From: Neoconidiobolus thromboides FSU 785
Taxonomy: Eukaryota; Fungi; Entomophthoromycota
Reading direction: 5' to 3'
NCBI GenBank assembly: GCA_025603075.1
Contig: MU626286.1
Location: 62,001 to 126,000, forward strand
DNA: 64,000 nucleotides
Shown in pieces: positions 6,365 to 49,131 of the stretch (its first letter is position 1; the number at the start of each line of letters is the position of its first letter). The translations under genes and the position numbers were made by a program. Under the pieces are notes generated by a model. It made no database searches. It had not been told where the DNA came from and worked only from the letters and a program-made list of their open reading frames with translations.

Positions 6365-6467
6365 TATGGGATGTTTTTTTGGGTTTATTACCTTTTCCAT
6401 CTTTTAAGCGCTATTTGAACGGAAAAACTGACAGTAAAATTCTTAAACATAAAAATATATCCCCATA
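6365..6467 (-). mobile_element. MITE-like foldback element, copy 1
   Basis: TATGGG...CCCCATA ends with core AAGCGCTATTTGA...AGTAAAATTCTTAAA. Confidence 0.85.
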
Positions 6468-7239
6468 TCGTCTTTAATTAAATATAGCTGAATTTTCTTA
6501 CTAAAATTAGACAGATAGATATTCATAAGTAATAAAGCTAACTCAGAATATTGATAACTTGTTGATAAAGGATGATGATGATGTTTTCATATTTTATCTT
6601 TATTTTCCTTGTAGTCAAATTTTTACAGTCAAATCAACTAATGATATCAACCTGATTTTATAGCTAGATTAAACTGCTTATGTAAACTCAGAGTTGCTTT
6701 GAATGCATAAAGCTCTTACTTTAGTAGACTTTGAAAGTAACATAATATAGAGATGCTTACATTTTGATTTATAGTATAACTACAAGCTACTTTTAACCTC
6801 TTTTATTATACATCATTGCCTTTCATAAGTTCTATTTTCTCTTAGAAATTAAATCAATGATGGATTCATTGTAACCATTTTGATAAAAATATAGATCAGT
6901 ATGATCAACTTATCAATGTACATATTGAATATCATAGCACCTAATATTTTTTAGTCTTACTAATGCTAGATGATTTATTAACTAGTTATAAATTGACAAA
7001 ATGCTAATAAGTTAATCAAATATTATAAATATTCAAAAATGAAAAAAAATCGAGCAAAAAATGATAAAAGTTAGGCAGTCGTTTGTTTATAATAACTATA
7101 ACTAATGATGCGTAGTCTTATTCTATCCAAGTTAACATTTGGACTTTTTTCTATCCCATTATAAACTACTGTATCTATATTTATTTTATCAAATAAAACG
7201 AGGAGTAAAGGGAAAATAAATTTACGATTGATTTCTACA

Positions 7240-7336
7240 TCTGGTGATGTATTTTTTAAAAATTTTGCTAATAATTTTCCCACTCAAATAGCGTTTAAAA
7301 ACGGAAAAAGTAATGAAGACAAAAAAACATCCCCAT
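7240..7336 (+). mobile_element. MITE-like element, copy 2
   Basis: GGTGATGTATTTTTT...CCACTCAAATAGCGTTTAAAA...AAACATCCCCAT. Confidence 0.8.
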
Positions 7337-7421
7337 CTGTTTCTTAAAAATTAATTTTTAATAATTGAAGGAGCTGGAAAAAAAGATGAAAAGACGAAAA
7401 AATTTAAGGATGTAAGTAAAA

Positions 7422-8510
7422 TCATTCATTTTGGTTTGCTTTACAAATTGCGCTTATTGAATTATACCCCTTATTACAAAAACTTCCTCTATAGAAATAA
7501 GACTTATCGAGTATTTTGTTGATATCAAACTTTAAATTAATTTTTTTTGAATATTGGGCAACAAAGAAACTGATCTTAATAATTCCTTTCATAACTTTGC
7601 TGAAATAAACTTCTTTCAATTTTGGTAATTTCAATAAAGGATTTGATTTAAGGATTTTGTATGGAAATATCCTAAGGTAGTAAATATTAGCCTATTTATC
7701 CATATTTGTAATGTTGTTTTCACTTTTAATGTCAAAACAAAAACTATCAAAATTTATATATTTTATGCTCTTAAACTGCCTTAAATTACCAAGGTATTTT
7801 AAACCAAAGTCATATTTAAGGTGGTCTTTAAGTTCTGATTTTAAGTTGGAAATAAACTTTGAAATCTGTTTAGAGACGTTAATAGTATCAATATCATCGG
7901 TACAATAGAGGTTTAGTATTTTTAATTGAGTAAACTTTGTCATAAATATATCCAATCCCTTGAGATTGAAGCGATCATACAACTCTAATTTAATTGACTT
8001 TAATTTGCTTAAGCTCAAATGAATTAAATAAATATTATCTATACTGTCTACTTTAGCTTCAAACAATTTCATAGCTTGTGTACAATCCTCAGAGTAGATG
8101 ATAAACTTTCATAAATTTGGTAATCCAATATTTACTCTAGCTTTATTATTAGTATTAGTCTTGATGCTACTATCACTATAATCCTTTTTCCTCAAATTAC
8201 TAGAATTATAATCCTCGTACATATAGTAAACAGACTCTGAATTCGGACAATAAATCAAGTTTCTGAGAGTATCATTATTTATTTCTATATGTCATACCAA
8301 CAATCCGTTTTCTTTAATAAACCTATCTTAATAGTTTTGATATTATATTAATAAAACTCATTCATAAATTGAATTGCGTTTAATTACATTACTAACTTTG
8401 CTGAATAAGTATTTAATCAAAAAGCATAAATTAAACAACCCTTCTGGGTCTGATAGTTTGAATATATCCTCCAAAAATATATTAGATAACTGCCTAAATT
8501 TCAATGTCAT
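7422..8510 (-). pseudogene. Decayed LRR/RNI-like gene, copy B
   Basis: Starts MTLKFRQLSNIFLED. ORFs 7692-8072 and 7422-7634 share one frame, separated by a single TAG. LRR-like periodicity (LSKLKSIKLEL, FTQLKILNL, LPKLKEVYF). The 5' part is broken by stops. Confidence 0.6.
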
Positions 8511-8729
8511 TTCAAAACAGATTAATAAACAAAATACAGAACTCAGCTAGCCTTTTATTCTTTTAATTTTAAGGGCAGCACTGTAATCAAGGTTATCAAC
8601 ATAGTTTGCTACTATTGGCTAAAGAATGTACTATTTTGTTTTGCTTTAAATCTTAAAAAGTCGACTAAATGTAAACTTAAAATTCAAAATAGATTCTATT
8701 TAGATGTATTTTTTTAACTATTTCTTTGA

Positions 8730-8828
8730 TATGGGGCTGTTTTTTAGTTTCATTATCTTTCCATTTTTTAAGCGCTATTTGAGTGGAAAGATTGTAGTAA
8801 AATTCTTAAACGAAAAAACATCCCCATA
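8730..8828 (-). mobile_element. MITE-like element, copy 3
   Basis: TATGGGGCTGTTTTTT...AAGCGCTATTTGAGTGG...AAAACATCCCCATA. Confidence 0.88.
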
Positions 8829-9137
8829 TAGTAATTTCATTTGAATTTATGTATATATCTTGCTTCATATTTATTTATTTAGAGTCACTCACATACCATA
8901 CTAGAGTACTTAAGTTTAGATGTAGTATTTTCATTAATATATGTAGACTTCCATGTTATTCTCATTTATTTTAGAATAGTTTAAAATTTTAAAAGTTATT
9001 GAGCTCTTTTTAAAAAATCCACATTCTTTGAATTATAGTCATCCTTGAAGTGATATCAAGCTTACAACAAAACGCTGCATTATTATTATACAATTTCTTT
9101 TACACTTCATTGTATTAAAAAATGAACTATTTTAACA

Positions 9138-9241
9138 TACGGGGATGTATTTTTTTGTTTAAGAATTTTACCAACGATCTTTCCACTCAAATAGTGCTTA
9201 AAAAATGGAAAAATAATGAAACTAAAAAAAACAGCCTCATA
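9138..9241 (+). mobile_element. MITE-like element, copy 4
   Basis: TACGGGGATGTATTTTTTT...CCACTCAAATAGTGCTTAAAA...AAACAGCCTCATA. Confidence 0.88.
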
Positions 9242-9823
9242 CCGTTAATTTTTTCAAAAAAATGATCAGTTTTTAAAAAAATGTTATTGTATCACAAAGT
9301 AAATCTAAATGGAGTTGAAAAAGTAATGAGGTCAACCTCAATTATTGTTCTTAATTATTTTAAAATATTTTATTTGAAGAATAAGTAATGAATATCCATT
9401 TATAGTAAATAAAATTTTAATTTTGATAATCAAAAAAATGCGTTACAGCTATTATTAAATAAACTTATAAAAGACTCGATGTTGAATAACTTTAACTTTC
9501 TTTAATTCATTTTTAAATTTATTATTATTAAAATGTTTGAATATGTAATAACTTCAAGCTTTCCCAAAACATCAATTCATTATTAATGTTTTGTATACAC
9601 TTATTTTTACGTGGTTTCATGAAAGTTTATTAAACATAAAGCCTATTCCTCATTTATATTATTTGATCAAACCACATGATACCGCTAATTTAATAAGCAA
9701 AATGGTTTAATTTAATATGAATTTATTAGCAAAAGTATTAAGAGTGTAATAAGGATTAGGTTTATTAACTGTAATAGTATATATATACATTTCTAAACAG
9801 AGGTAAAAAAAGCACAAGAATAA

Positions 9824-10408
9824 TTAAAGTTGGGATTTAGAAATGGTAGTAGCTATCTGATTCTCCGCTGGATAGATGGTCATTTGGAAGTCTTTAACTT
9901 TAAACCCACATTTCTCATAAAATGGCACATTTGATTCACTGCAATTCAATATAATTTTATAGCATCCTACCTTGACACCAATATATTTTAATGCATCGAT
10001 AACTCTTAGGCCTAATTTTTTGCCTCTTTGTGAATCATGTACTACAATATCTTCAATGTGTCCTGCAAGTCCACAGCTCCTTATAAACTTACATTCTGTA
10101 AGTAAAGTACCAGCGGCTACTATCTTTTTTTGCTCAGTATCCTCAATTACTAAAGAGTAATAATTGCCCGCTTTTAATATCCTCTCGTAGTTGTCATTGA
10201 ACATCTGTCTAGTAACGTTACCAGTGACTGTTAATTGAGATAAACACTGGATATATCCTTTATCATAGTCTCCTAACTCTAAAGGACGCATAACATAACC
10301 CTTTGGCAAGGCTTCTTTTACTTCTGGAGAGATTAAGCTTTCAGTAAATAAACTGGTGGTATTTAAATTTAGATAGTTATTCATGGTTTGTTTTAAACTT
10401 TGAAACAT
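9824..10408 (-). CDS. GNA1: Glucosamine-6-phosphate N-acetyltransferase (GNAT family), intronless
   Basis: RPLELGDYDKGYIQCLSQLT, GHIEDIVVHDSQRGKKLG and GCYKIILNCSESNVPFYEKCGF are typical Gna1 motifs. Confidence 0.95.
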   Translation of the reverse strand: MFQSLKQTMNNYLNLNTTSLFTESLISPEVKEALPKGYVMRPLELGDYDKGYIQCLSQLTVTGNVTRQMFNDNYERILKAGNYYSLVIEDTEQKKIVAAGTLLTECKFIRSCGLAGHIEDIVVHDSQRGKKLGLRVIDALKYIGVKVGCYKIILNCSESNVPFYEKCGFKVKDFQMTIYPAENQIATTISKSQL

Positions 10409-11153
10409 ATTGCTATTATCTTTGTTGGTTTATATACTCTTTTTCTTGATTATTATAAATTAGAAATTATAAACTCAACACAAGTTTTTTTTATCATTAA
10501 TAATAAAACCTAGCCAATAATTGTGGTTTATTATATTGGGTGATATGTCATGATAAGCAAGTTATCTATGACATATTATTGGTTAAGTTTATTTTTAAAT
10601 CCATTCAAACTTTATTAGTGAATATTTATAGCGGCCAATGAGTTAGGTCCTTTGCTACCCTACAAAATTAATTTATTTATAGACTGAAATGCTGATAAAA
10701 AATAACTTTTAACTTAAACTAATTAAAAGTAGTTTGACCGTTGCTGTTTTAGTTTTATCATGATAAGATTTAAATAATTTATTATTAAAAGTTATTTTAT
10801 TGCTTTACCCTTTTTTATATAAAAAGTTTAAACTATTTAATGATAATGAAAGTATACTTTATCAGCTTTTTGATAATAGATACTAAATAAGCTATATTTG
10901 TAATTTATAATAAAACTAATAGTGCTAATATAAAATTGTTAATATTAAGCAATATTGAATAACATTGTACAATATCATTTTATAAAAAAGTCATCAAAAA
11001 TTTGTAACGTTAGAAAATCATATTCATTCTAAGCTAAATAAAAATACTTATATTTAACTAACATTTGTGATGTAAGCAAACTAGAACAAATAACCAATCA
11101 AAGAAATAGGTTTAAAAAAAAGTTATCTATATGAGTGTATCTATTTTTTTTAA

Positions 11154-13842
11154 ATGTCAGAAGTAAAAAGTGGAGTTCCAGAGGAAACTAAAAAGAATGA
11201 AAAAGGAAATATAAAAGAAGAAAAAGAAGTGAATGAAAAGACAGTCACTGCTAACAATTTGTCGCAGCCCCAAATTATTGTTGAAGAGTTTCAATATCTA
11301 TTGGAAAAATCTCAACAGTTGTTTGCTGGATTGAGGTAGGCTTTTAAATAATAATAATTGGTAGGGTTAAGTTTATCGAAAATTTTAGAGAGCTATCTCC
11401 TGTTTCTGGGAGACAATGGCAAACCCATTTTCAAAGAACGTTTGAAATTTATACAAAAGTAAATTAAAAATAATTAAAAGTCTTCATTTAAAATGTTTTT
11501 TTAGCTATGGAAATTTCAGCAGATTCATAGGTAAAGAATTTCAATTTAAAACAATTCTAAGTAATAAATATTTTAAATAGAGTAGTTTTAGAAGATAAAG
11601 AATATTATGGATTAAAGCGGTGGGAAGTTGGAGAAATTGCTTCAAAGATTGGACAGATTTATTATCATTATTAGTAAATTAAATAATATCAATCAAAGTT
11701 AATATTAAAAAAGTAATCAAAGTTTAAGGACGAGCGAAACAAATTACTTATATGAATCCTACGTATTTTATGAAGCTATTCATGAAAGAAACTATTTTAA
11801 AGATGTATTAGATGCTAAAAAGTAAAAACATTCGTAATTTTTAAACACAATGTGATATTTACAAACTGATTAGTCCAGCCCAAATGATAAAAAAATTAAG
11901 ATATTATGCGCGATTTATTGTAGTCGGACTTCTATTATTAAGAAAAGAAAGGGTAGCTAAACTATATCAAGAGCTATCTAGTTTAGTAGAAGATTACACG
12001 AAATTATTTAAACCTGTGGATTCGATGGAATGGCAAATGGTATTACAAGAAATTATTACATTTCTGGAGGTAAGTCAAATTAAAATAAATTAAAATGATT
12101 GACATTTTAATGTTAATAAAGGTAGAGAAAAAGATATTACCTTTAGCCGAAGGAACGGCTCAAGCTTTACCTATTCAATTCCGCTTTCCAAATATTAATA
12201 GAATAGCCATCGACACGATGGACAGTGATAATACAAACGCTACCTTAGATGATAATAAGTTAAACAATTCGTCAAAAGTAACTGGGTTAAGGTTACAAGA
12301 AGTTATAATAGTTGGAAATAAAGTATCTCAAGTAAGTCATATTTCTATCAACCTCTATCAAAATTTTGACATGTGTTTTTTAGGTCAAATTTTCAGAGTT
12401 ATCATTAGATATGTATCGTATGGTATTAACATTAGGTATTAGTATTTAATCAATTTAACGTCCAAATTAACAAATTAAAGAAAGGGAACCACAACATGTA
12501 TCAAAAAGTACAACAACGGCAAATCCAGAGTCCACACTAGATGAGAATGATTTAAATAAAAAAAGTAATGAACTTAAAAATAAACCCAATTTTATAAGAT
12601 TACCAACCTCCAATCTTAAAAAAGTTCATCCACCACATAAATATTTATTATTTCGACCTACCTTCTCTCAGCTATTAGTTTATATTTCAAATTGCTACAA
12701 AGTAAAGTAATTTGTCATGCTCATTTGTTCAGCATTAATTATATTGATAGGATCTTTCAGATAATTCAGCTTTATTGATTTATTTATCTTCGGATGCTAT
12801 TAAATCTATTCCTTCTGAAAAAAGCACTCAATATGGTAAGTTTAGCTTATTATATTTTAACTATCATATATTAATAATAAGGCTATGTTGGTGGATGTGC
12901 AACATCGTATCGAAAACCAATGGATAAAGCATCCGATATTGCAGATTCTATTGCAGCAAGTCATTGTTTGCATCCAGGAGATTTAATTCCATTTACTCGT
13001 AAACCTTTATTTTTAATTGTGGAGTCGAATTCAAATGACTCATTTAAAGTAAACAATTTTTATACAATCATATATTTAATTTATTGTTTCGATAATAGAA
13101 AATGCCAAATTTATTTAATCAACCATTCTTATGTCTTATGGCACCTATCGATTCCCCCTTTAAAGGTAAGTTTAGAAATTATTGTCTATTACTATACAAC
13201 CTTTAATCTATTTTCTAGATAGTGCTATGGCAGGTTCAATAATGACAATGTTCCTTTCATCACCTTTGGTAGCATTTTGCTATATAGCGGATTTAGTTGA
13301 ACTAAGCCCAGAGATATGGACTAAAATGACAGAGCATTTTACTTATTTGGAAGAAAAATGTATTGAGTTATTACTTAATACAGGGTCATTAGGTAATTAA
13401 CTAAGATTATAAATGCTTTATGGTATTTTATGACAATATTTTTTAGATGCTACTACTAAATCTTTTATGTATGATGATTTCTTGAAATTATTGATAGCAA
13501 GGTTTATATTGGCAACTATAATTATGGGATTACATCGATTAATTAAAGATTCTAAAGTAACTAATACCAACTTTTATAGTTTTAATAGCTAACTCTTATA
13601 CACTTTTTTAATAGAACTTGCCTACTAGTTTACCTAGTTTTCCATCCTCAATATTTAGTAGTAACGAGTTAATATCTAAATTAAGATCAGTTATTGAGCT
13701 TACTGGCACTAGTTTGATATTCTCCTATTTAGATAAAACTTCTCAACCTTGTACTCCTTCCCCTTTAATGACTCATGGTGATAGTTATTTGACTATCCAT
13801 CCTTCAAGCACTACTGAACCAATACCACCTAAGTCAGCTTAA
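11154..13842 (+). CDS. SCAI: SCAI-family protein, many introns
   Basis: Spliced reading EEFQYLLEKSQQLFAGLR/...FQRTFEIYTK/LWKFQQIHR/...GLKRWEVGEIASKIGQIYYHYY/LRTSETNYLYESYVFYEAI...KKLRYYARFIVV matches the SCAI family. Confidence 0.9.
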
Positions 13843-16811: not shown

Positions 16812-16873
16812 TTTAAAAAAAAATGAATTTCGAGACTGAAATTTCAAATATTTTTTTATAGTTTATTTGACAA

Positions 16874-19768: not shown

Positions 19769-19842
19769 ATTCATTTAAAATGACATCAAATAAAAACATA
19801 ATAAATATTTGAAGAAAATTGAATTAAAAATTATTTAATTTA

Positions 19843-20396: not shown

Positions 20397-20501
20397 TATG
20401 GGAGTGTTTTTTTTGGCTTCATTACTTTTTCCATCTTTTAAGCATCATTTGAGTGGAAAAATTATTAGTAAAATTCTTAAATACAAAAATACATCCCCAT
20501 A
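20397..20501 (-). mobile_element. MITE-like element, copy 5
   Basis: TATGGGAGTGTTTTTTTT...GAGTGGAAAA...ATACATCCCCATA. Confidence 0.88.
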
Positions 20502-20504: not shown

Positions 20505-20587
20505 CTTTTATTTACTTTTTCTTGTCTATTTTCTAAATGCTATTAAGTAGAAAATTATCAATAAGATTCATAAAAAAACATACTTAT
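20505..20587 (-). mobile_element. Degenerate MITE-like element, copy 6, abutting copy 5
   Basis: CTATTTTCTAAATGCTATTAAGTAGAAAATTATCAATAAGATTCATAAAAAAACATAC aligns to the consensus; ends are eroded. Confidence 0.55.
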
Positions 20588-20712: not shown

Positions 20713-20815
20713 TATGGGGCTGTTTTTTTTAGTTTCATTATTTTTCCATTTTTTAAGCGCTATTTGAGTGGAAAGATTGTAGTAAAATTCTTAAATAAAA
20801 AAACACATCCCCATA
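20713..20815 (-). mobile_element. MITE-like element, copy 7
   Basis: TATGGGGCTGTTTTTTTT...AAGCGCTATTTGAGTGGAAAG...CACATCCCCATA; very similar to copy 3. Confidence 0.88.
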
Positions 20816-34989: not shown

Positions 34990-35610
34990 ATAAGTTGAAC
35001 AATTTCCCTAACATTTAATATTACTAATATGGTCCATGTATTTACTCAAATTACAATATTCCAATTGACTTTGGCTATTTATAGACAAAAAACATAAAGT
35101 TTCTAGACAAAAATAAAGATTGATGTTAGTTGATACAATATGATTTCCAACTAGATGGTTTTTATCTTTTAATTCAATATTAAGGTAACTTAATGAAGGT
35201 CCGAATAATTCACAAACTTTAGCTTCCATCTTTTATCATAGGAATTATACCCAAGATAAGGCATTGAAGTTAGTACAATTATTGGAGAGATGTAAGATTC
35301 AGCAAAGAAGAGGTATTAATGAATTTTAGATCTTTCTTTAGTATTATTACCCAATAATGCGCTATTTTTCTTTTTGTAAGTTGTATGTGATAGTATAGTT
35401 GCAGACTCTGTTAACATTATACCATCTTTAGTTTCAAAAGCTGGAGTTTGGCCCAATGGGGATTTTGTTAAATATTTGGAAGTTATGTTGTTTATACCAA
35501 ATAAAAAATTGGGGCAAGAATCTATTTCAATTTCATTAAGTCTAACGATTGCGATAATTTTTCTATTCGAGAATTTTTTAGTTCTTCGTATAAACGCTAT
35601 AAAGCATTAT
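34990..35610 (-). pseudogene. EF1B-gamma-type glutathione S-transferase-like pseudogene, copy 1
   Basis: Reads PNFLFGINNITSKYLTKSPLGQTPAFETKDGIMLTESA...LLGNNTKERSKIH*YLFFAE, then after a frameshift LNIELKDKNHLVGNHI (ORF 35008-35229). Resembles the EF1B-gamma GST N- and C-domains. Confidence 0.75.
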
Positions 35611-36078
35611 ATGTATAATAACATAAATATAGTGTACTAAACTTACACCGACTGATACCATAGCTGATTAATAATTAAAACCTCCATCTAATTAGTTATT
35701 TTAACTACTATTTATACTTACTTTATTAATAGTTAATTCAAGTAAATTAAAGGTATGAAATATTAAAATTGGACTAGGTTGTTTTACTATCCAGTTGTTT
35801 TATCAATAAAGATTAAAATGAGGCTTTATTATATCATCAACATAAAATTCAAAAGGTTGTTCATAATATCGATATAAGTTAACTCATATCTACACTATAA
35901 GCCATAGTTCAGTCTAATAATTTAATAAATTTTATTATAAGGTTGAATGTTTGAACATATCAAAGCTCCTATTTTTCTTTTTTATCTTAGTTGCTCTTTA
36001 ATAAATACGGAAAGCATTCGATTTTGTTAGTAAATCCTTGAATGAAAACATATTTTAAAAAAGTCTTATCAAATATTA

Positions 36079-36183
36079 TATGAGTATGTATTTTTTTTTG
36101 TTTAAGAATTTTACTGATAGCCTTTCCACCGAAATAACGCTTAAAAATGGAAGAAATAATGAAACTAAAAAAATACCCCCATA
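36079..36183 (+). mobile_element. MITE-like element, copy 8
   Basis: TATGAGTATGTATTTTT...TTAAGAATTTTACTG...AAATACCCCCATA. Confidence 0.85.
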
Positions 36184-36597: not shown

Positions 36598-36696
36598 TAT
36601 GAGGATGTTTTTTTTGATTTCATCACTTTTATATCTTTTAAGACCTATTTAAGTGGAAAGATTGTTAGTAAAATTCTCAAAAAATACATCCCCATA
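36598..36696 (-). mobile_element. MITE-like element, copy 9
   Basis: TATGAGGATGTTTTTTT...AAGTGGAAAGATTGTTAGTAAAATTC...ATACATCCCCATA. Confidence 0.82.
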
Positions 36697-37823
36697 TAAC
36701 GTTTTTAAAGTATATTCTTATAATAAGAATTTTATTATTTTTAGAAATTACTTATATATCAGGATAAAATAATAGTTTATTTATTTATGATTTATATCTG
36801 CAACTTAATTTAAACTTTTATTTTATTCTGATATATAATTTCTAACTCATATAACCCTTTTTCTGTTGGAATTATCGCTTTCCTGCTAACGACTCTGGAT
36901 TTGCTTCAATCTTACTGTTTATATTGAAGAATTCTTTCGAATTTTTTGTACTTTTCCACTATCTTTTTTGTGTAGCCAATCCTTTTACATTAATAGTTTC
37001 CTTTAACCTCTTTTTTGAGAAATAAACCCCTTAGCAATATTATAAGTAATATAATGTATATAGGTTGTTTTTTCTGTAGACAATCCTTGTTTGATGACCA
37101 TTACATACAAATACATTTCATCTTATTCTTGAAGACACACTTCTCCAGCTCTTATATTTCCTTTAGTTTTTTTCTCTTGATTAACAATGATTTTTTCGAA
37201 ACCGCAACTTATAGATAACTCATTATTACCTTCCCTTGTACTCTTTTTCTATTTAATTAATAGCTTCAATAAACTCCTTTTAGCTTTTTTCTTAATTTTA
37301 TAATATGACTGTTGATTACTATTGATTTGTTTCTTACTTACCTTTTTACCCATTAAGATTTAAAATTAAAATGGAATGAAACGTAATTTAAACTAAACAC
37401 TAATGTTTTAATTTTGACATTAAGTAAAAAAATTTAAATATTTTAAACTATGTTTTGCTTCTTACCTGATGGAATACTATGTTATCTTTCCAATTTTATA
37501 AAGTCTGAAGTCCTAAGCTTTGTACATTTGCTTTTTTTGTTAACAATTATAACAAAAACAATAGTAACTTAAGCAATAATCTTAAATCATTGTTAACTAT
37601 TTTATCTTTACTTCTTTCTAGGAATCTCTCTCTAAATAGCAATACTTCACTAAATATACTAATAATAAATCGCAACATCCTTTTGTCTTACTATGTCGAC
37701 GGTCTTTTGTCTATAAGATTAACATCTTATATTATTAAATACTGGAACTAGAAAGATATTTCTATATGCAATAAAGCCTAAAAAAATTATAATCATAAAA
37801 ATCAGACTGTTTCGAAAGCAATA

Positions 37824-37927
37824 TAAGGGGATGTATTTTTGTGTTTAAGAATTTTACTAATAGTTTTTCCACTCAAATAGCGCTTAAAAGATGGAAAAAG
37901 TAATGAAACCAAAAAAACACCCCCATA
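37824..37927 (+). mobile_element. MITE-like element, copy 10 (close to consensus)
   Basis: TAAGGGGATGTATTTTTGTGTTTAAGAATTTTACTAATAGTTTTTCCACTCAAATAGCGCTTAAAAGATGGAAAAAGTAATGAAACCAAAAAAACACCCCCATA. Confidence 0.9.
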
Positions 37928-37989
37928 AATTAAAATAAATCCAATTTTGTTTAATGTAAACTCCTCCTTGCTCTTTTTGGATAAATTTA

Positions 37990-38615
37990 GGATACTTGTC
38001 CAAATATTTATTACCCCCTAGTAACTTCTAATCTTTGACATATTATCCAGAATGCTCATATACCTACTAAAATCAGGATATTTCTTACGATCCTGTTTAC
38101 TTAATAGGAATGTAGTATTTCCTAACATAAATAAAGATTAATACCCATTATAGTGATCTGATTTCCGATTAAATATGTTTCCCAGTTAATTCATTATTAG
38201 GGTAATTTAGTAAATACTCAATTTGCTTATAATTTTTAGTTTGTAATGCTTCATCATATTCCCTATAACCAACATAAGGTAATAAAATTGGAATGAAAAT
38301 TTGAGAAATGAGAAATTCAGCAAAAAACAGATATCAATGAATTTTGAATGTTTCATTCGCATTTGGACCTAACAATGGGTTGTTTTCTTTTTGGGATGCT
38401 ATATACAATGGTATTGCTGCTAATTTTGTTAATATCAAACTATATTTGGTTTCAAATGCTGAGGTATGGCTTAAAGGAATGTTTTTACATATCCAGGAGT
38501 TCTGTTGTTTGTACCAAATAAAAAGTTGGGATCAAAGTCAATTTCTATTTCACATAGTTTGACAATGACTAAAGATTTGTACACTCGAAAGTTTTTTTAG
38601 ATCCGTATAAACACT
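37990..38615 (-). pseudogene. EF1B-gamma-type GST-like pseudogene, copy 2
   Basis: FRVYKSLVIVKLCEIEIDFDPNFLFGTNNRTPGYVK/PLSHTSAFETK...LLGPNANETFKIH*YLFFAE...TYLIGNQIT...KYPDFSRY. Colinear with copy 1; several frameshifts and stops. Confidence 0.78.
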
Positions 38616-39756
38616 ATAAAACTTATTAAATAAAATACTATAAATAAAACAATACTATAATTGCCTTCAATTGATATCATTGTTACATTAGTAGTTAAAA
38701 TCAAACTGAATCATAGTATTTTGGTAGATATTTATACTTATTTGATTATTGGTTGATGTAAATTAAGTATATAACAAAATAAATTTTAACAAGGTCATCA
38801 TCATCATCTTGTTTTAAAAAGCTCGATGAGGTTTTATCATTATTATAAAATGTAGTTAGAAAGTTTATTAAGATATCAACGCAAGTTGACCTGTATCTAA
38901 ATAGCAAGCTGTAGTTTATACTGACTATTTGATAAAAACTAGTCCATGACTAGCTGAATATATCGAAATATCTGTTTTTGTTTCTTTATTTCATGTATTA
39001 TGAAATATAAAATCTATATTATTGTTAGTTAAATCCTTAAAACACATCACAAATTATTTTTAAATTGACATACAATTATTATCTACTGTTCAAGTTTTGA
39101 GTTGAAAAAACATTGTTCCAGATTTTAAGCAAATATTATCAGCTTTGAGAGCTTTGTATAGAACTCCTTGATGTCTTTCAAAATATCATAGTTTGCACTA
39201 CTGAAATAAAATCTGAGCAAATTATTTACTTTGTCACTGCTACATTCATTTAATATAAAATGATGAAAAACAAAATGATTAGAATAAAAGTATTAAAAAA
39301 AATAGCAAATTACAAAGTTTGCCTACACTTAAGTTATTTTAGCAATATAAAATAAAAATTAGTGAATAGCTATTAAATTCGGAAATTCAAATTAGAACTT
39401 AAATAGAAAATGCTATATTAAAATTGATAAAGTGATGTTATACTTCTCAATTTTGTGTTCTTCATCTAATAGCTCCATAAATAGATTATTATTTTACCAT
39501 CATCTCTTCTTGATTGCCTGTATTACCCCTCTTTTTGGAATCCACCCCTTCAACTAAATTTTCATAACTCCTCTTACTCATTTCATTATGGCTCTCTTAT
39601 GGAACAAATCGTTACCCGACTTAGGTAAAGATCAAAGAAAACATAAACCATTGTAGTAAACTACATGTGTTTTCAAACAAAAAGTAAAAGAATCAAAATA
39701 ATTAATTAAAATATAAGTTTATTAATATACAATAACAATTAGATTGAGAGAGAGAA

Positions 39757-41415
39757 TTAATGTTTTTTACTTTCGAGCTTTAACTCACCTTGTAAAATTA
39801 AGTTTTCTCCTTCATGCTTGAGCTCTTCTTTATGCAATAACTTTCCTAATAATACTTTAGCTTTTCCTTTGAGTTTATCAGTGTGACCACCTGAGTTTCT
39901 TTTGTCATTTGGATCATGGCCATCAACATGATGATCCTTATTACCTATAGCGCTATGATCTTTGGTATTTGTAACTTTGTTTTCAGTTCTTAACACACTG
40001 GTTTCTTTGTGATCTAGATTTACATTGTTATTTAATGGATTGGCTTTAGCAACATCATCTGGTTTTGTTCCAACATGAATAGGGTCATTAGTGGCAATAT
40101 CATCTATATTACATTTACCATTATCATTTAAAGCCCCATCTTTGGTACCATGTAACTTAGCATCATGAGCTTTGTTATCATGTACTGTAGTATTGTGCAA
40201 TTTATTATCATGTACTTTAGTAGTATCCGATTCAGGATTAGGTACATTTGAGCTAGCAATAAGAGGATTGACGCTAGAAACTGCAGTTCCAGTTCCAGCA
40301 ATTGCAGCAGATGGGATAACAGAATGCTTTACTTTACTATTATGACTCTCTTGATGAATACCATGAGCATGGCTATCATGTCTCAAATCATGACTATCTT
40401 TCTCATGCTTTAATGTGTGACCATGTTTGTTATGGGTTGAATCATGTTGTACCTTTGAAGCATCAGGGTAATGAGTATCAATTATACCAGGCATTGGAGT
40501 CGCTGCTAAACCGGTTAACTTTTTTTCACCAGTATGGATATGAGGATGAGATTTATGTTCATCATCGTTAACATTATTAGTACCTGTAATTGATACATGA
40601 TGTTTATTATCAAGATCTCCATTTGAATTAACTGGGTAATTAGTATCTCTTACACCGTTATTTAAATGATGATCTTCTGTACTATTATTATGAAATTTGT
40701 CACTGATGGTATTGTTTAATGCTGGATTATTATGCTCAAATGGCTGGTTTTTGAACTCTTCGTTTGTAATATCTTCTGGGATTGGCTTAAAATTATTAGA
40801 GGTAACACCGTTATTATTTAAGTTGTCATGATGGCCAGCAGTGTTAGAAATACTATTTAAATTACCATGAGTATTAGACGTAGCCCCAATGTTGTTTAAA
40901 TTGTTATGGTTATCAGCAGTAACAAGGTTACTATTTAAATTTTTCTGGTTAGAAGTAGTAGAATTACTATTTAAGTTGTCATGGTGATTAATAGTAGAAG
41001 GAATGCCGTTTAAATCGCTATTATGATTATTGTTATCAAGGTTGATATTTAAATTAGTACGGTTATCACCAGTGGTAGTAAAACTATTTGATTTGTTATG
41101 TTGATTGCTATTAGTGGTGCTATCTAAATTGATATGATGGTTAGTAGGAGAAAGTTTACTATTTAAATTATGATGATTAGTAGTAGCGGTGGTAGGATTG
41201 TTACTTAAATCAGCATCTTCATTACCAGTAATACGGTTATCACTTAAACTAAGATTATCATTATTTAAAGCTCCATAGTTACCAGTAGTAGTAGTAGTAC
41301 CATTTAAACCATCGGTATGACCGAATGCAGAATTTGTGGTGTTAGAAATATTATCTTTAGGATATTCCGAGTTAAGGTGGTGGCTTTGAGTGTTGTTATT
41401 TTCTGTAAGATTCAT
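39757..41415 (-). CDS. Asn/His-rich low-complexity protein with a CsbD-like C-terminal motif
   Basis: 552-aa intronless ORF, hydrophilic throughout; ends DKLKGKAKVLLGKLLHKEELKHEG, resembling CsbD-type stress proteins. Confidence 0.75.
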   Translation of the reverse strand: MNLTENNNTQSHHLNSEYPKDNISNTTNSAFGHTDGLNGTTTTTGNYGALNNDNLSLSDNRITGNEDADLSNNPTTATTNHHNLNSKLSPTNHHINLDSTTNSNQHNKSNSFTTTGDNRTNLNINLDNNNHNSDLNGIPSTINHHDNLNSNSTTSNQKNLNSNLVTADNHNNLNNIGATSNTHGNLNSISNTAGHHDNLNNNGVTSNNFKPIPEDITNEEFKNQPFEHNNPALNNTISDKFHNNSTEDHHLNNGVRDTNYPVNSNGDLDNKHHVSITGTNNVNDDEHKSHPHIHTGEKKLTGLAATPMPGIIDTHYPDASKVQHDSTHNKHGHTLKHEKDSHDLRHDSHAHGIHQESHNSKVKHSVIPSAAIAGTGTAVSSVNPLIASSNVPNPESDTTKVHDNKLHNTTVHDNKAHDAKLHGTKDGALNDNGKCNIDDIATNDPIHVGTKPDDVAKANPLNNNVNLDHKETSVLRTENKVTNTKDHSAIGNKDHHVDGHDPNDKRNSGGHTDKLKGKAKVLLGKLLHKEELKHEGENLILQGELKLESKKH

Positions 41416-41489
41416 TTTGATTATTTATTTTTTATAAAGTATGCAATGCCCATTTGTTTATATACTATAGTTTTAGACATTCAATTTTA

Positions 41490-41497
41490 TGACGTAA
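41490..41497 (-). promoter_or_regulatory. ATF/CRE-type site (TTACGTCA on the minus strand)
   Basis: TGACGTAA about 75 bp upstream of the ATG at 41415, with a TATA-like TTTATAAA at about 41431-41438. Confidence 0.45.
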
Positions 41498-42680: not shown

Positions 42681-42751
42681 TGACACATCATTTCTTTTCG
42701 ATGAGATCCGTGACATCATCATGATGAATCAAAAATATTAGAGTATATAAA
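42681..42751 (+). promoter_or_regulatory. Conserved promoter module TGACACATCA / GTGACATCA / TATA, paralog 1
   Basis: Same motif order is present upstream of the paralog at 44381-44458. Confidence 0.55.
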
Positions 42752-42793
42752 CAGAATGTAAATGTGTTAGAAGGTAAATAAAATAAAAACAAC

Positions 42794-43879
42794 ATGTATA
42801 GTGAAAATCAAGATCAATTAAATTACACTCATAACAAGGATTCTAATTTGAATAACCTTGACTCCAACCAAGCCCATACCACAGGCCCCACTGTTGTAAA
42901 GAATCCCACTTATAATAACAACGTTAACTCATCCAATACTACTGGTATAAGTAGTAATCCAACCCACAAACAATACAATGATTTAAATTCGGTGTCATAT
43001 AATCCTAATAATACCAATGACCTTAATAATCTTAATACTGCCACTGCCACTGCCGCGAGTGGTAAACCAAGTAACAACCATCTCAACAATTTGAATTCAG
43101 AGACATACAATAGTAATACTGTTAACACCAGTACCACCAACCATAGTTATACCCCAAGCGAGACCCAGAATAGCACCACGTTTAATAACTCTAGTAATAA
43201 CCCCGGATTAAGCAATAACCTTGATAATTCCTTTGGCGCCAATAAGTATAATAGCCAATACAGTAATAACAATGAAGCTTACGATCATGAACGTGTTAAT
43301 CCTAATACCAATATCCATTCTATCAATAATCAAGCCCATGGAAATAATACTTTAGCTGATCCTATTAATGATCATAGTAGAGTCAATAATAATCTTGACC
43401 ATTCTAATCCTGGCGATAAGCATCATAATAACCACTCTAATCATGGCAAAACTCATGGAACAGCACTAGGTAGCATGGCTATTGCTATGGGTGCTAATTC
43501 GGCAGATATGGCTTGTGTTATGGCATCTCAAGAAGAAAGCAGACAGCATGAAAATCAACTCAATGATTTTAATCAAACTCATCCAAATCAACAACATAAT
43601 GATTTGAATCAAACTCATGGTAATACTCATACTACTCAATCACATAACATGAACCATAGTAATTTAAATAAACATGACAATAGTTTAAATCAAACTCACA
43701 ACAATAACCTAAATCAGACTCATCCAAATCAACAATATAATGATTTGAATCAAACCCATAGTAACACTCATACTACACAACCACACCACAAGGTAGATCA
43801 CAGTGATACTAAAGATCATAAGGAGAGCGGTATTAAAGAAAAAGTGAAGCATGCTATTGATAAAGTATTTCACCATTAA
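42794..43879 (+). CDS. Asn-rich hydrophilic protein with a dehydrin/LEA-like C-terminal helix, paralog 1
   Basis: 361-aa intronless ORF with repeated LNQTHPNQQ(H/Y)NDLNQTH; ends ESGIKEKVKHAIDKVFHH. Confidence 0.8.
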   Translation: MYSENQDQLNYTHNKDSNLNNLDSNQAHTTGPTVVKNPTYNNNVNSSNTTGISSNPTHKQYNDLNSVSYNPNNTNDLNNLNTATATAASGKPSNNHLNNLNSETYNSNTVNTSTTNHSYTPSETQNSTTFNNSSNNPGLSNNLDNSFGANKYNSQYSNNNEAYDHERVNPNTNIHSINNQAHGNNTLADPINDHSRVNNNLDHSNPGDKHHNNHSNHGKTHGTALGSMAIAMGANSADMACVMASQEESRQHENQLNDFNQTHPNQQHNDLNQTHGNTHTTQSHNMNHSNLNKHDNSLNQTHNNNLNQTHPNQQYNDLNQTHSNTHTTQPHHKVDHSDTKDHKESGIKEKVKHAIDKVFHH

Positions 43880-43980
43880 GTTTAAGTTTTTGTAAATAAA
43901 TAATTTATGCTGTAATTTTGTTTTTAGTTTTTATTATAATTTTAATCATATTTTTATAATTGAAGCAATAATACAACTAA

Positions 43981-44066
43981 ATATTTTGTCTGTGTTCTTT
44001 ATCAGTTTTTCTACTCAATAGTGCTTAAAATAAGGAAGAATAAATTAAAATGAAAAAGTTATAGTC
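43981..44066 (+). mobile_element. Degenerate MITE-like element, copy 11
   Basis: CAGTTTTTCTACTCAATAGTGCTTAAAATAAGGAAGAATAA matches the element core; ends are lost. Confidence 0.55.
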
Positions 44067-44380
44067 CTATTTTTTATTTTAGTTTAAAATGGTCCCTATA
44101 AATTTTAAGTTATTGAGACGATAGGTAGCCATTTATCAGCTGTCTAAACAAGGTACATTTTTAATAATGAAAACTAAAATAACAATATCTTATCATGTTT
44201 TCCTCATTAAACCCTCAGTTATCTTTAACTATTCAAGGTTCTTATCATTTTTATCGTATGATTATTATTTCAATTCTACTGAAAGATAAAAATCCTTGAT
44301 TTAGAACTCCATATTTTTTGTATTGTTGAGTTTCTTATGTTTCATGTATTTTTCATGATAATAAGCTTTTAGAAAAAATA

Positions 44381-44458
44381 GTGACACATCATTCTCATTT
44401 TTTTGAAAAAAATCGTGACATCACCATGATAAGATAAGAAAATCCAAGTATATATAAA
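44381..44458 (+). promoter_or_regulatory. Conserved promoter module, paralog 2
   Basis: GTGACACATCA at 44381, GTGACATCA at 44415, TATATATAAA at 44449. Confidence 0.55.
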
Positions 44459-44503
44459 ATGCAAGAAAATGAGTAAGAAAATGAAAAATAAAATAAAATC
44501 AAT

Positions 44504-45358
44504 ATGAATAATCAAAATCAATTAAGCTCTACCCATAAGAAGGATACTAGTTTAAGTAACCTTGACTCTAACCAAGCTTATTCTACTGGTTCTCAACTTA
44601 GCTCTGGCTTAAACTCGGAGATGTACAATGCTAATAATAATAGTAATCTTAATGCTACCAATATTTCTACTGCTACTGCTGCAAGTAGTAAACCAAAAAA
44701 TAGTTATCTCGATAACTTAAATTCTGAGATGTTTAATAATAGTAAGGCTAATACTAGTAACACTAATCTTAGCTATATTCCAAGTGAGACCCAAAATAAC
44801 AGCTCATTGAATAATTCTAATAATAAGACTGGGTTGAACAGGAACTCTGATGACCCTTTTAAAGGTAATAAGCACAATAATAATCAATATAGCAATGCCA
44901 AATTATCTGGATCAGTAATTGATAATACTGCTGCCATGAGTGTCAATTCACAAGATATTGCTTCTTCTATAACTGCCCAAGAAAAGGATAACATAAATAA
45001 TAATCAATATAACAGCAATGAAACTTATAATAGTAACCAATATAATAATACTAAACCATCTGGATCAGTAATTGATAATACTGCTGCCATGAGTGTTAAT
45101 TCACAAGATATTGCTTCTTCTATAACTGCTCAAGAAAAGGATAAAAAGCATAATACCCAATATAATAATAATCAAGCTCATAGTAATGAACGTATTAATG
45201 CTGATAGTAATATTCATTCTATTAACAGTCAGACCCATACCAATACTAATACTACTCAATCACATAATGTGGATCATAATAATATAGATAAGCATCATGA
45301 GGAAGGTGGTATTAAAGAAAAGGTAAAAAATGTTATCGATAAAGTATTCCACAGCTAA
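44504..45358 (+). CDS. Asn-rich hydrophilic protein, paralog 2
   Basis: 284-aa ORF colinear with 42794-43879 (NLDSNQA, TATAAS.KP, PSETQN); ends EGGIKEKVKNVIDKVFHS. Confidence 0.8.
   Translation: MNNQNQLSSTHKKDTSLSNLDSNQAYSTGSQLSSGLNSEMYNANNNSNLNATNISTATAASSKPKNSYLDNLNSEMFNNSKANTSNTNLSYIPSETQNNSSLNNSNNKTGLNRNSDDPFKGNKHNNNQYSNAKLSGSVIDNTAAMSVNSQDIASSITAQEKDNINNNQYNSNETYNSNQYNNTKPSGSVIDNTAAMSVNSQDIASSITAQEKDKKHNTQYNNNQAHSNERINADSNIHSINSQTHTNTNTTQSHNVDHNNIDKHHEEGGIKEKVKNVIDKVFHS
44905..45144 (+). repeat. Intragenic ~87-bp direct repeat, two copies 153 nt apart
   Basis: ATCTGGATCAGTAATTGATAATACTGCTGCCATGAGTGT...GAAAAGGATA at about 44905 and 45058, encoding SGSVIDNTAAMSVNSQDIASSITAQEKD twice. Confidence 0.9.
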
Positions 45359-45769
45359 TATTTGCAAACAAATAATTTGTATTGTAATTCTATCATAATT
45401 TTTATTTAAAGTGATAAAACTTTATAAAGCAATAAATTAAAAATAAAGGCAATAATAAAAAGGCAATAATTTATTTATATTACAAATAAAGTTAGGTTAT
45501 AGTTATGTTAAATTTACTTCTAATTTGTATGATAAGTTAAATAATTTAGACATTACTAATATGATTTTTCCATTTAATAATAATGGCCGTAATACTTGAC
45601 CAGCTAAGATAATCTTTTGAAGTAAAATATATCAAAGTAATTAATTATAAATAGCTGTTTTGATCCATAATAAACCAACCTTTATGATTACTAGAGCAAC
45701 TATTAAATAACCCTTAGATATTGAAGTAAGTAAATATAAACTGCGAGTATAATAATATAATAATAGCTT

Positions 45770-46320
45770 ATTTACCTTTATATCTTTTCTCTAAATTAAA
45801 TAAGCTCTGATATACATGGGTTTTCACTAAGTACTTTAATTCATTAAGATCATTCCATTGAATTTTTCATAAGAAATTAATATCTAAGGGCAAATCTTCT
45901 TTATCTGAAGTTCTAAATACATTATATTTAATTAACTTATGCCAACTACTCTCCGTAATATCTATTTTATTACCAATTTTATAATAAATCCTACCATTTG
46001 CTCCCTATTGTGTTAATTTCAGTATACCATTAGTACCATAATTGTTTTTATTGTCATTTCTTCCTCTAGATGGCAATGTTACATAAGCATATAACTCACC
46101 TAATTTTTGATCCTAATTTCTTATCTTTCTTTAATTATAAATCCGTTTTAATTTCTCAACAACCTTTGGTTTTAACTCTAGTAACAATGAAGCAACAGAT
46201 TTCTCACTGTGACTGGCATCGCTATCTTCATCATCCGAATTTAGTAAAATATCCAATTCCTTAACACTGATGACTACAAGTTTATTTGAACATGAAGAGA
46301 AGGGTTGGATTAAATCATAA
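45770..46320 (-). pseudogene. Decayed coding frame of unknown origin
   Basis: One frame of about 180 codons (YDLIQPFSSC...SDDEDSD...QSLFNLEKRYKGK) with four internal stops. Confidence 0.4.
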
Positions 46321-46738
46321 GATTAATGTCTTTTATTAGAGTTTAGTTGATATAAATTTAAGATTTATCTATTTGTATTACCATAATCATGGGCCCATTA
46401 AGCTTGTTATTTGGGCTTTTATTAAATGATTCACATTCATTTTCGTTCCTATTCCCACTCCCAATTGAATAATCATATCCATAAATACTCTGTCTCTCCT
46501 CTCTCCTACCAATGTTCTTATATTCTTCACAACCATCTTGATATTGGCCTATTATAATCCACTTCCGTCTTAATCAATCTCTTACAATATTTCCCTTTAT
46601 TATCAAAATAAACATAACATCTCATTATATGGTCATTCTATTCTAAACAGACATACATAGAAACAAAATAAAATATACATCTACCCTGAGGATCTTTTAA
46701 ACTTAAATTCATCTCAAAGTGAAGATAGTAAAAAAGTA

Positions 46739-46844
46739 TATGGGGGTGTTTTTTTTAGTTTCATTACTTTTCTCTATTTTTTAAGCACTATTTGAGTAAA
46801 AAAGCTATTAGTAAAATTCTTAAACAAAAAAATACATCCCCATA
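46739..46844 (-). mobile_element. MITE-like element, copy 12
   Basis: TATGGGGGTGTTTTTTTT...AGTAAAATTCTTAAACAAAAAAATACATCCCCATA. Confidence 0.88.
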
Positions 46845-47158
46845 TAAATTTGAAAGAATTCTGATTTTAATATTATTCCGGATTATGAAAGATTCATAGT
46901 TGTTACATTGATAAGTTAGATTCCTAGTCAATGCATTAATATATAATGTTTTTTATGACTATTGATGCTTAAGGCTACTTTAGAGTAATAGTCTCTTCAC
47001 TTATTTCTTTATCTTTATTTGTTATAACATTATCTTTTGCACCCTGGTTTTGGTTTACCATTCTTTATTTTTCCTACTTTGTTTATCTAAATTAACTAAA
47101 TAGCTTAGCTAATAAATAAATAAATAAATACAAACAATTCAAATAGAAATAGTTAACA

Positions 47159-47263
47159 TATGGGGATGTATTTTTGTGTTTAAGAATTTTACTAACAAAT
47201 TTTCCGCTTAAATAACACTTAAAAAATGGAAAAAATAATGAAGTCAAAAAAGACACTCCCATA
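47159..47263 (+). mobile_element. MITE-like element, copy 13
   Basis: TATGGGGATGTATTTTTGTGTTTAAGAATTTTACTAAC...AGACACTCCCATA. Confidence 0.88.
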
Positions 47264-47697
47264 TATTAAACTATTTTTTAATATTTTTTAATATTTTTTA
47301 GCAATTTCAATACTAACTATAATAGCTAATTCAAAGCCCAATATTTAAAATAAAATAAATTAAAACTTAATGAAAACAGTTAAATTATCTTTTATTCATA
47401 AAAGTATAAGTGTTAAATTGTTTTTATTTTATAATAAATTAAAACATTGATTTTTACAAATTTTATCATTGACGCTACCCTCTATTATTAATAATTATAA
47501 AATATCAATGACTTTGGAACAAAAAACATAAACTACATTAACGTCATAAACTATAGTCTACAAATTATGAAAATTAGTTAGATCTTGTCTATATAATAGC
47601 TATAAAATTATTGAACTTTATTGATATAAAACCATTTCTTGCATCAATCAATTTGCTAGTAATTTTATATATTTTTTGTGTTATTTATTCATAGTAG

Positions 47698-47779
47698 GAC
47701 ACTTTGGCCGAGCGGTTAAGGCGTGAGCCTAGAAAGCTCATGGGGTTTCCCCGCGCAGGTTCAAATCCTGCAGGTGTCG
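47698..47779 (+). tRNA. tRNA-Ser, anticodon AGA, intronless
   Basis: Acceptor stem GACACTT/AGGTGTC, D-arm TGGCCGAGCGGTTAAGGC, anticodon arm TGAGC-CTAGAAA-GCTCA, long variable arm, T-arm GCAGGTTCAAATCCTGC. Confidence 0.96.
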
Positions 47780-47783
47780 TCCC

Positions 47784-47789
47784 TTTTTT
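47784..47789 (+). terminator. Pol III terminator (T6)
   Basis: T-run 4 nt after the tRNA 3' end. Confidence 0.8.
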
Positions 47790-48050
47790 AACCTAAGGGG
47801 GGGATATAGGTCAGTTACCAATTATTCTTTTTTGGGATTTTTAAAAGAGTTTAAATTTACAGCTAAACCCTGATATATTTTTTAAATCTAAGTTTAAATT
47901 ATTATAATTTTTTGTTTTTAAAACTCCTGATTTGGCTATTAAATATAATTTTATTTTTTTATCATTTTATTTTGTTTCTTATTAACAAAGTTTTTTAATA
48001 CATTAATTTAATAATTATATTATAAAATTATAGCTGTTGTATTTTTTGTA

Positions 48051-48155
48051 TATGAGAGTGTTTTTTTTTACTTCATTATTTCTTCCATTTTTTAAGCGCT
48101 ATTTAAGCGGAAAATTTATTAGTAAAATTCTTAAACACAAAAATACATCCCCATA
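48051..48155 (-). mobile_element. MITE-like element, copy 14
   Basis: TATGAGAGTGTTTTTTTT...AAGCGCTATTTAAGCGG...ATACATCCCCATA. Confidence 0.87.
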
Positions 48156-48430
48156 TAATACTTTAGTTTAAAAAAACTTTAATATAATAGCTTTTTTTGA
48201 AACTTTATTAAACTTAATTTAACAAGCTTTTTTTGTTTTTTAACTATATTTATTATTATTAATAAAACAAATTATTCTTCCATTTATTTCATATAACCTT
48301 TTTGATTACTCTATATTATTTTATTTATTTCTAAGCTTATTTTAATTTTTAAACTAAGATTTTATGATTTATTGTAAACAGTTAATTAAAAACAGTATAA
48401 ATCATCAATTATAAAAATAACTATTAATTA

Positions 48431-48533
48431 ATATAAAAGTATTTTTTTAGCTTTATCACTTTTTCTATCTTTTAAACATTATTAAGCAGAAAAATTATTA
48501 ATAAAATTTCAAATAAAGGAATACATCTCTATA
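48431..48533 (-). mobile_element. Degenerate MITE-like element, copy 15
   Basis: TTTATCACTTTTTCTATCTTTTAAACATTATTAAGCAGAAAAATTATTAATAAAATTTC...ATACATCTCTATA. Confidence 0.6.
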
Positions 48534-48552
48534 TATTAGAAAGTATGTTTAA

Positions 48553-48652
48553 TATGAAAATGTATTTTTTTAAAGAATTTCACTAACACTCTTTCTGTTG
48601 AAATAGGGCTTAAAAAATGGAAAAAGTGATAAAATTAAAAAAACATTCATAT
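48553..48652 (+). mobile_element. Degenerate MITE-like element, copy 16
   Basis: TATGAAAATGTATTTTTTTAAAGAATTTCACTAAC...AAATAGGGCTTAAAAAATGGAAAAAGTGA. Confidence 0.65.
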
Positions 48653-48723
48653 ATATCATTTGCTTTAAATAATATGGTTTTTTTAATGCCAGATTTTAAA
48701 AAAGTGAGTAATATTAATCTACA

Positions 48724-48829
48724 TAAGGGAGGTGTATTTTTGTATTTAAGAATTTTACTAAAAATCTTTCGGCTCAAATAGCGCTTAAAAGATAGAGAAA
48801 GTAATGAAACCAAAAAAAACATCCCCATA
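48724..48829 (+). mobile_element. MITE-like element, copy 17
   Basis: TAAGGGAGGTGTATTTTTG...CTCAAATAGCGCTTAAAAG...AAACATCCCCATA. Confidence 0.87.
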
Positions 48830-49031
48830 ACCTATTGCAAAATAACTATAAAGGAACAAGGAATTGGTGAAAGAAAATAGCAAGCTTACCCTCAAGCAAT
48901 GATGAATTTTATTTATTTAATAAAGTTGATTAATAAAGTTTGAGCTTAACTTTTTATTTTTTTTTATTTTTTCAATTAAACGAGTACAAATACAACTTTT
49001 TTCAGTAAATACCAAACAAGTTATTTCATGA

Positions 49032-49131
49032 TATAGGGATGTTTTTTTAACTTCATCACTTTTTCCTTTCAAGCGCTATTTGAGTGGAAAAACTGTTAGT
49101 AAAATTCTTAAACACAAAAAAACATCCTCAT
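49032..49131 (-). mobile_element. MITE-like element, copy 18
   Basis: TATAGGGATGTTTTTTT...AAGCGCTATTTGAGTGGAAAAAC...AAACATCCTCAT. Confidence 0.85.

Follow-up and report, generated by a model that had tools for sequence, protein, structure and literature searches.

A 98-bp MITE family with 4-bp, ATAT-type target-site duplications in Neoconidiobolus thromboides and its candidate Sola2-type partner

A stretch of 64,000 nucleotides from the fungus Neoconidiobolus thromboides FSU 785 (contig MU626286.1, positions 62,001 to 126,000), referred to here as the window, contains many copies of a repeat of about 100 bp with inverted ends, and this raises the question of which transposase moved it. A preliminary description, made from the sequence alone, regarded the repeat as a miniature inverted-repeat transposable element (MITE) and suggested a TA target-site duplication, pointing to Tc1/mariner. 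The results given below show a duplication of 4 bp. They allow the whole to be read, with good confidence, as a MITE with an ATAT-type 4-bp duplication that is present in approximately 5,000-7,000 copies and likely to have been mobilised by a resident Sola2-type DDD transposase.

Structure, abundance and target site of the element

Sixteen copies were aligned to make an nhmmer profile with which the window was searched, the boundaries of the element being set at GGGG...CCCC. The search found 16 full-length copies and two fragments, eight on the plus strand and ten on the minus strand, spanning 6368-49129 (Table 1). The 18 copies previously described in both orientations within 6365-49131 were thus recovered; the total stands. 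A 21-nt core, CCACTCAAATAGCGCTTAAAA, matched the window 13 times at three or fewer mismatches, where no match is expected by chance, and repeat finding placed the same positions in direct and inverted families of 100-120 nt.

The element is typically 97-100 bp long (92-100 bp for the window copies) and has the form GGGGATGT...ACAYCCCC, with the consensus GGGGATGTATTTTTGTGTTTAAGAA...AAAAAAACACCCC for the 98-bp element. Its terminal inverted repeats are imperfect and extend over about 19 bp, GGGGATGTATTTTTGTGTTT being matched by GGGGGTGTTTTTTTGGTTT, the reverse complement of the 3' end. The inverted ends noted earlier are therefore present, with the correction that the true ends are GGGG...CCCC and that the AT or TA outside them is part of the 4-bp target-site duplication. 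No transposase or Pfam signal was found in the copies. Identity to the consensus is 80-98% for the window copies, no near-identical pair of copies was seen, and the copies of the family are 2-24% diverged from the consensus. Being short, non-coding, bounded by inverted repeats and present in high copy number, and having in addition target-site duplications and empty sites, the element is a MITE, a 97-100-bp non-autonomous cut-and-paste DNA transposon, as first proposed. Nearly all variable columns of the consensus in an alignment of 91 copies are C/T or G/A transitions. One frame on the minus strand of the consensus is open over the entire element, and element plus duplication amount to 102 nt (3 x 34).

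The abundance of the core was examined in the assembly of strain FSU 785 (24.6 Mb in 799 contigs). At three or fewer mismatches there were 2,650 forward and 2,633 reverse matches, 5,283 altogether, and none for a reversed control. This is one match per 4.7 kb, against one per 4.9 kb in the window, so the density in the window is typical of the genome; 20 small contigs totalling 81 kb gave 49 matches. Given that the core criterion catches 13 of the 18 window copies, the genome total would be near 7,000 copies, or about 0.7 Mb and about 3% of the genome. There are thus about 5,000-7,000 copies, evenly distributed over both strands, and the earlier expectation of thousands genome-wide holds across contigs, the family not being confined to the window.

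The flanks of the element were then used to define the duplication, the boundaries of two copies (6368..6464 and 48727..48826) having been shifted by one base for this reading. Of the 16 full-length window copies, 15 have the same four bases on either side, in some cases a non-palindromic sequence (ATCT, ATAC and, twice, ATAA). Perfect 4-bp flanks were also found at 38 of 44 young copies outside the window, the best genomic matches to the copy at 37820-37930, and at 68 of 91 non-redundant copies. Most of these 68 (57, or 84%) are ATAT; the remaining perfect duplications among the 91 copies are ATTT, AGAT, AAAT, ATAA, ATAC, ATCT, CATA and ATGT. As ATAT can be divided as A+TA+T, such flanks by themselves are compatible with both a 4-bp and a TA duplication, and patterns were therefore counted genome-wide. 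The pattern ATAAGGGGATGT-N(75-95)-CCCCATAA, in which ATAA stands on both sides, was counted 14 times and its counterpart with ATAT at the end three times, with none for the controls. About half of the 14 matches are elements in the opposite orientation, so that the first position of the tetranucleotide co-varies as well.

Empty sites were available for two MITEs nested in copies of a larger transposon described below, each being compared with six paralogous copies of that transposon. For L063:1398-1495 the sequence is ...TTGATTG ATAT (MITE) ATAT GTTC... when filled and ...TTGAT(C/T)G ATAT CTTC..., with a single ATAT, in the six paralogues. At L065:1324-1422 the empty sites read CCCATTATTAACAG and the filled site CCCATT (MITE) ATTATTAACAG, a 4-bp duplication of CATT if one of the terminal Cs is assigned to the target and a 3-bp duplication of ATT otherwise. 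Within the window, the paralogous segments 35107-35779 and 38125-38795, compared as possible empty sites, reach no MITE. The reconstructed target is palindromic, A-w-T/ATAT/A-w-T. The target-site duplication is thus 4 bp, mostly ATAT, and not TA. The 4-bp direct flanks and the excess of ATAA..ATAA over ATAA..ATAT, the reverse of the prediction for 2 bp, remove the basis for the TA reading and the pointer to Tc1/mariner; the alternative division offered at the same time, AT/GGGG...CCCC/AT, was nearer to the truth. One further arrangement, at L013:105-299 (G000:C37), has two oppositely oriented MITEs with exactly one ATAT between them, as expected if the second copy inserted into the duplicated target of the first.

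The partner element and its transposase

Searches of the window with tblastn and blastn found no transposase or partner-element DNA, in agreement with the earlier statement that no autonomous partner is visible there. Nor were repeated open reading frames (ORFs) of at least 150 aa found among the 20 small contigs. The partner was reached by a masked all-against-all blastn of small contigs, which gave contig-end repeats; these led to larger contigs and then to ORF fragments. A high-copy contig-end repeat of 545 bp begins ATAT/GGGGTTGTCCGAATTG. A 99-aa transposase fragment was matched at 139 or more places in the genome, in open frames of up to 415 aa, many with internal stops. Two complete copies of the element were obtained, L064:661-3131 (2,471 bp) and L065:549-3023 (2,475 bp including a nested MITE). 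The inverted ends are 15-22 bp long, of the form GGGGYTGTCYKAATTrGTTTCA, with GGGGYTGTCYKAATT ends, and single ends of partner copies are mostly flanked by ATAT. Where the preliminary description had looked to transposase frames bounded by the same inverted repeats as the MITE, this 2.47-kb element is what was found, with the reservation that the middle of its inverted repeat differs. Two high-copy non-coding repeats present in L042 (G000:C470) tend to lie at contig ends, one of 545 bp at 4684-5228, which is the 5' end of the Sola2-like element, and one of about 460 bp at 5242-5700, which belongs to an unrelated family; together they accounted for 787 first-look candidates. The longest transposase frame (415 aa) lies between two MITEs at L068:2556-3993 (G000:C28:123355-124792) and its last 17 codons run into one of them, so MITEs truncate transposon copies and chimeric frames of this type may be annotated as proteins.

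The ends of the MITE were compared with those of the partner. The terminal octamers, GGGGATGT and GGGGTTGT, differ by one base and share GGGGnTGT. The last 40 nt of the MITE align with the 3' end of the partner with 31 identities (z 5-7), a level matched by one or none of 2,000 shuffles, and the two cross-comparisons between opposite ends of MITE and partner were not significant.

The transposase belongs to no Pfam family and gave no match to the Tc1/mariner families DDE_3, Transposase_1 and DDE_1 in a Pfam search. Its homologues number 3,004 cluster representatives at E <=1e-3. The closest named ones are annotated as hypothetical proteins and come from Smittium angustum, S. culicis, S. megazygosporum and Furculomyces boomerangus (Harpellales) and from Dentiscutata erythropus, with 31-40% identity and E values of 1e-114 to 1e-60 for the family profile; they share the DDD motifs of the partner transposase and none is described as a transposon. 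Clusters in the ESM Atlas come from rotifers, Zoopagomycota and molluscs, some of them with DUF7869, a domain that a few relatives match below threshold. The alignments show a conserved TDxCxxC...H and a triad D282/D365/D406, each residue of which is either invariant or conserved to 90% or more across 49 homologues, the triad lying in the motifs DFK(E/Q)N, WxDxGxHF(R/K)S and HGKSxVDGHFG. An AlphaFold model of the protein (mean predicted local distance difference test score, pLDDT, 86.6) has an RNase H-like core, beta1-3/alpha/beta4/alpha/beta5/alpha, around the triad, and its best PDB matches are the transposases IstA, MuA, Mos1 and TnsB as well as retroviral integrases. In one environmental relative, P0102 (1,136 aa), the Sola2-like core is followed at the C-terminus by a fused ubiquitin carboxyl-terminal hydrolase (UCH) domain.

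Sola2 DNA transposons were reportedly described by Bao, Jurka, Kapitonov and Jurka in 2009. The transposases of two of them, Sola2_DFa-2 of Dictyostelium fasciculatum and Sola2_PPa-1 of Polysphondylium pallidum, are printed in Additional file 3 of PMC3627910. They contain, in the same order as the protein found here, HRSTFYKFVPS...TDTCPYC, MDFKENIALG, FDVFSDVLNH...LFK...WSDGAKHFKSAEIL and YHGKSDVDRHF. Identity within these four blocks is about 35-60%, as estimated by eye in a comparison confined to Sola2. The ordered motifs in common are RSTFxKxxPS...TDxCxxC, DFK(E/Q)N, WxDxGxHFKS and HGKSxVDxHF, and in both cases there is no Pfam family. Both also have short inverted ends and AT-rich 4-bp duplications, here those of the MITE, those of Sola2 being reported as AWWT, ATAT, AAAT and ATTT (PMC3627910). 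The element described here differs from the dictyostelid ones in its size (2.47 kb, the transposase having about 600 aa, where the chimeras measure 10-15 kb and have 888 aa), in its termini (GGGG rather than GAG or GAA), in that no Fanzor passenger gene was seen in it, in its host, a zoopagomycete fungus, and in that the main product here is a 98-bp MITE in thousands of copies. The superfamily is best assigned to Sola2, with the by-eye comparison as the main residual uncertainty.

Several observations weigh against a Sola2-type partner or against its connection with the MITE. The Sola2 label rests on a visual comparison of blocks with printed sequences; cluster names, the profile search and the ESM Atlas all failed to return a Sola label, the database relatives being called 'hypothetical protein' throughout. 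No intact transposase ORF was seen among the copies examined, in which the longest open frame is that of 415 aa. The two complete partner copies lack matching 4-bp flanks, having AATT/ATAT and TATT/ATAT, which are AT-rich. The 5' ends of MITE and partner resemble each other weakly (z about 3) when four of the copies are compared and show no similarity for the fifth, L042, and positions 9-15 of the inverted repeat are ATTTTTG in the MITE and CTGAATT in the transposon. Because of this last difference the surviving transposon family is not the direct parent of the MITE. The MITE reads instead as a deletion product, joined end to end and since diverged, of a related Sola2-type element.

The mechanism suggested by these comparisons is as follows. 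The MITE inserts at ATAT-like tetranucleotides within the palindromic target and duplicates the 4 bp. As it encodes nothing, it must presumably have been moved in trans, and the likely enzyme is the DDD transposase of the resident Sola2-type family of 2.47-kb elements, a predicted partnership in which the MITE looks as if both ends of one such element had been joined and had since diverged. Given that all transposase copies examined are decayed and that the MITE copies have diverged as far as they have, the family is probably no longer moving.

Alternative explanations and significance

Stowaway MITEs duplicate TA, and one could suppose that the element is a Stowaway-like Tc1/mariner MITE with T/A outermost in its inverted repeat. 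The two are alike in being AT-rich, about 100 bp long, bounded by inverted repeats, found in thousands of copies outside ORFs, and related to an autonomous element mainly through their ends. Both the ATAT flanks and the ATAT empty site can formally be divided as A-TA-T with an element starting at T. However, the outer positions of the tetranucleotide co-vary on the left and right (ATAC/ATAC, ATAA/ATAA, CATA/CATA), and a 2-bp duplication predicts that the discordant class of flanks should lead by about 4:1, where 14 concordant and three discordant cases were counted. The element with matching ends, moreover, has a DDD transposase without a Tc1/mariner Pfam match and not the DD34E/D transposase of Tc1/mariner, though no genome-wide search for mariner transposases was made. 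A Tc1/mariner origin is thus very hard to sustain. The same must be said of the proposal that the copies are not transposons and represent structured small-RNA genes, a tRNA-derived short interspersed nuclear element (SINE) or an intron-generating 'introner' element. The single strand does fold better than its shuffles (z = -3.1), seven copies cluster round a tRNA-Ser gene, and the length of element plus duplication is a multiple of three. The fold, however, is merely the pairing of the inverted ends; RNAalifold predicted no conserved pair from 36 copies and an Rfam search of the window matched only the tRNA. The two orientations are equally frequent, the duplications and empty sites show insertion of DNA, and no copy lies between two halves of a recognisable ORF.

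A more serious objection accepts the 4-bp duplication and questions the mobiliser. The termini would then resemble each other through convergence on one and the same target, or would go back to an element that is extinct or was not sampled and that may belong to another superfamily. The mismatch at positions 9-15 and the weak 5' subterminal resemblance would be in keeping with this, as would the fact that about 110 kb of the genome was sampled outside the window, so other autonomous families may exist. On the other side are the common GGGGnTGT terminus, the identical preference for ATAT targets, the orientation-specific match at the 3' end with its null cross-comparisons, and the nesting of MITEs in transposon copies, from which it follows that both resided together while the MITE was active. 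A mobiliser other than the Sola2-like family found here is accordingly improbable, and mobilisation by the resident Sola2-type transposase is preferred.

The Sola2 superfamily and MITEs are both already known, and the system found here is of no new kind. A search of the literature turned up no account of this MITE family or of N. thromboides transposons. The superfamily call moves from Tc1/mariner to Sola2, and a single 98-bp element makes up about 3% of the genome of an insect-pathogenic fungus. In a 2017 survey of fungal genomes, which did not cover N. thromboides, Sola2 turned up a single time, in Aspergillus flavus (PMC5751038); the present family adds a well-documented fungal case. For the assembly, much of the fragmentation goes back to the MITE family, to the 2.47-kb partner and to two further repeats at contig ends, all of which should be masked before gene annotation. 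One could go further and speculate that no larger MITE expansion derived from Sola2 has been seen so far (about 7,000 copies, making up 3% of a compact fungal genome), that the Sola2 lineage behind it was passed down vertically within the early-diverging fungi (Zoopagomycota, Glomeromycota) and not acquired by rare horizontal transfer, and that some copies, given that they keep strictly out of ORFs and that their target is palindromic, might serve as regulatory sequence or remain mobilisable; taken together these proposals are doubtful.

Copies in the window and their surroundings

Table 1. Copies of the MITE in the window, in order of position, with the left and right 4-bp flanks or the basis of the call.
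Feature	Position	Strand	Flanks or basis
MITE copy, full length; 3' end short of one C	6368..6464	-	ATAT/ATAT
MITE copy, 92 bp, internal deletion	7243..7334	+	ATCT/ATCT
MITE copy	8733..8825	-	ATAT/ATAT
MITE copy	9141..9238	+	ATAC/ATAC
MITE copy, 95% identity to consensus	20400..20498	-	ATAT/ATAT
MITE fragment, profile positions 7-73	20521..20579	-	profile search
MITE copy	20716..20812	-	ATAT/ATAT
MITE copy, 5' end eroded (GAGTATG)	36082..36180	+	ATAT/ATAT
MITE copy	36601..36693	-	ATAT/ATAT
MITE copy, best preserved in window, 98% identity to consensus	37827..37924	+	ATAA/ATAA
MITE fragment, profile positions 31-89	43999..44057	+	profile search
MITE copy	46742..46841	-	ATAT/ATAT
MITE copy	47162..47260	+	ATAT/ATAT
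MITE copy	48054..48152	-	ATAT/ATAT
MITE copy, eroded	48435..48530	-	ATAT/ATAT
MITE copy, eroded	48556..48650	+	ATAT/ATAT
MITE copy, 5' end GGGAGGTG	48727..48826	+	ATAA/ATAA with boundary one base left of the profile's
MITE copy, eroded	49035..49129	-	CAAT/ATAT, duplication degraded

All MITE copies in the window lie clear of stop-to-stop ORFs of at least 80 aa and, judged from ORFs, none is closely flanked on both sides by halves of one ORF. The earlier remark that no intact gene is interrupted agrees with this as far as ORFs are concerned. Since 36% of the free ATAT sites in the window lie inside ORFs of at least 80 aa, random insertion at ATAT sites would give this result with P of about 3e-4, a value that is partly circular because an inserted copy itself breaks an ORF.

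The window is about 27% guanine plus cytosine and its coding density is low under genetic codes 11 and 4. Domains recognised in its ORFs are RasGAP, PI4-kinase, JmjC, MFS and a class II aminoacyl-tRNA synthetase of the asparaginyl/aspartyl/lysyl type, the PI4-kinase being in pieces as though interrupted by introns. The only tRNA is a tRNA-Ser with the eukaryote-type anticodon AGA, at 47698-47779 on the plus strand. The eukaryotic genes, the low coding density and this tRNA indicate that the window is not bacterial. A mollicute genome read with code 4, which the low GC content and the scarcity of ORFs might suggest, is rejected on the same grounds, since code 4 leaves the coding density low. 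The tRNA gene sits in a 4-kb gap free of ORFs (45.4-49.4 kb) together with seven of the 18 MITE copies.

Other repetitive coding sequence was also observed in the window. Three ORFs, 39757-41415 (-), 42794-43879 (+) and 44504-45358 (+), have no Pfam family; one has internal repeats of 39 nt and the other two are His/Asn/Thr-rich paralogues with tandem repeats of 141/153 nt. At 60774-62430 there is a long low-complexity ORF, rich in Ser, Asp and Glu and made up of 18-nt periodic repeats, and the ORF overlapping it in antisense is an artefact of these repeats.

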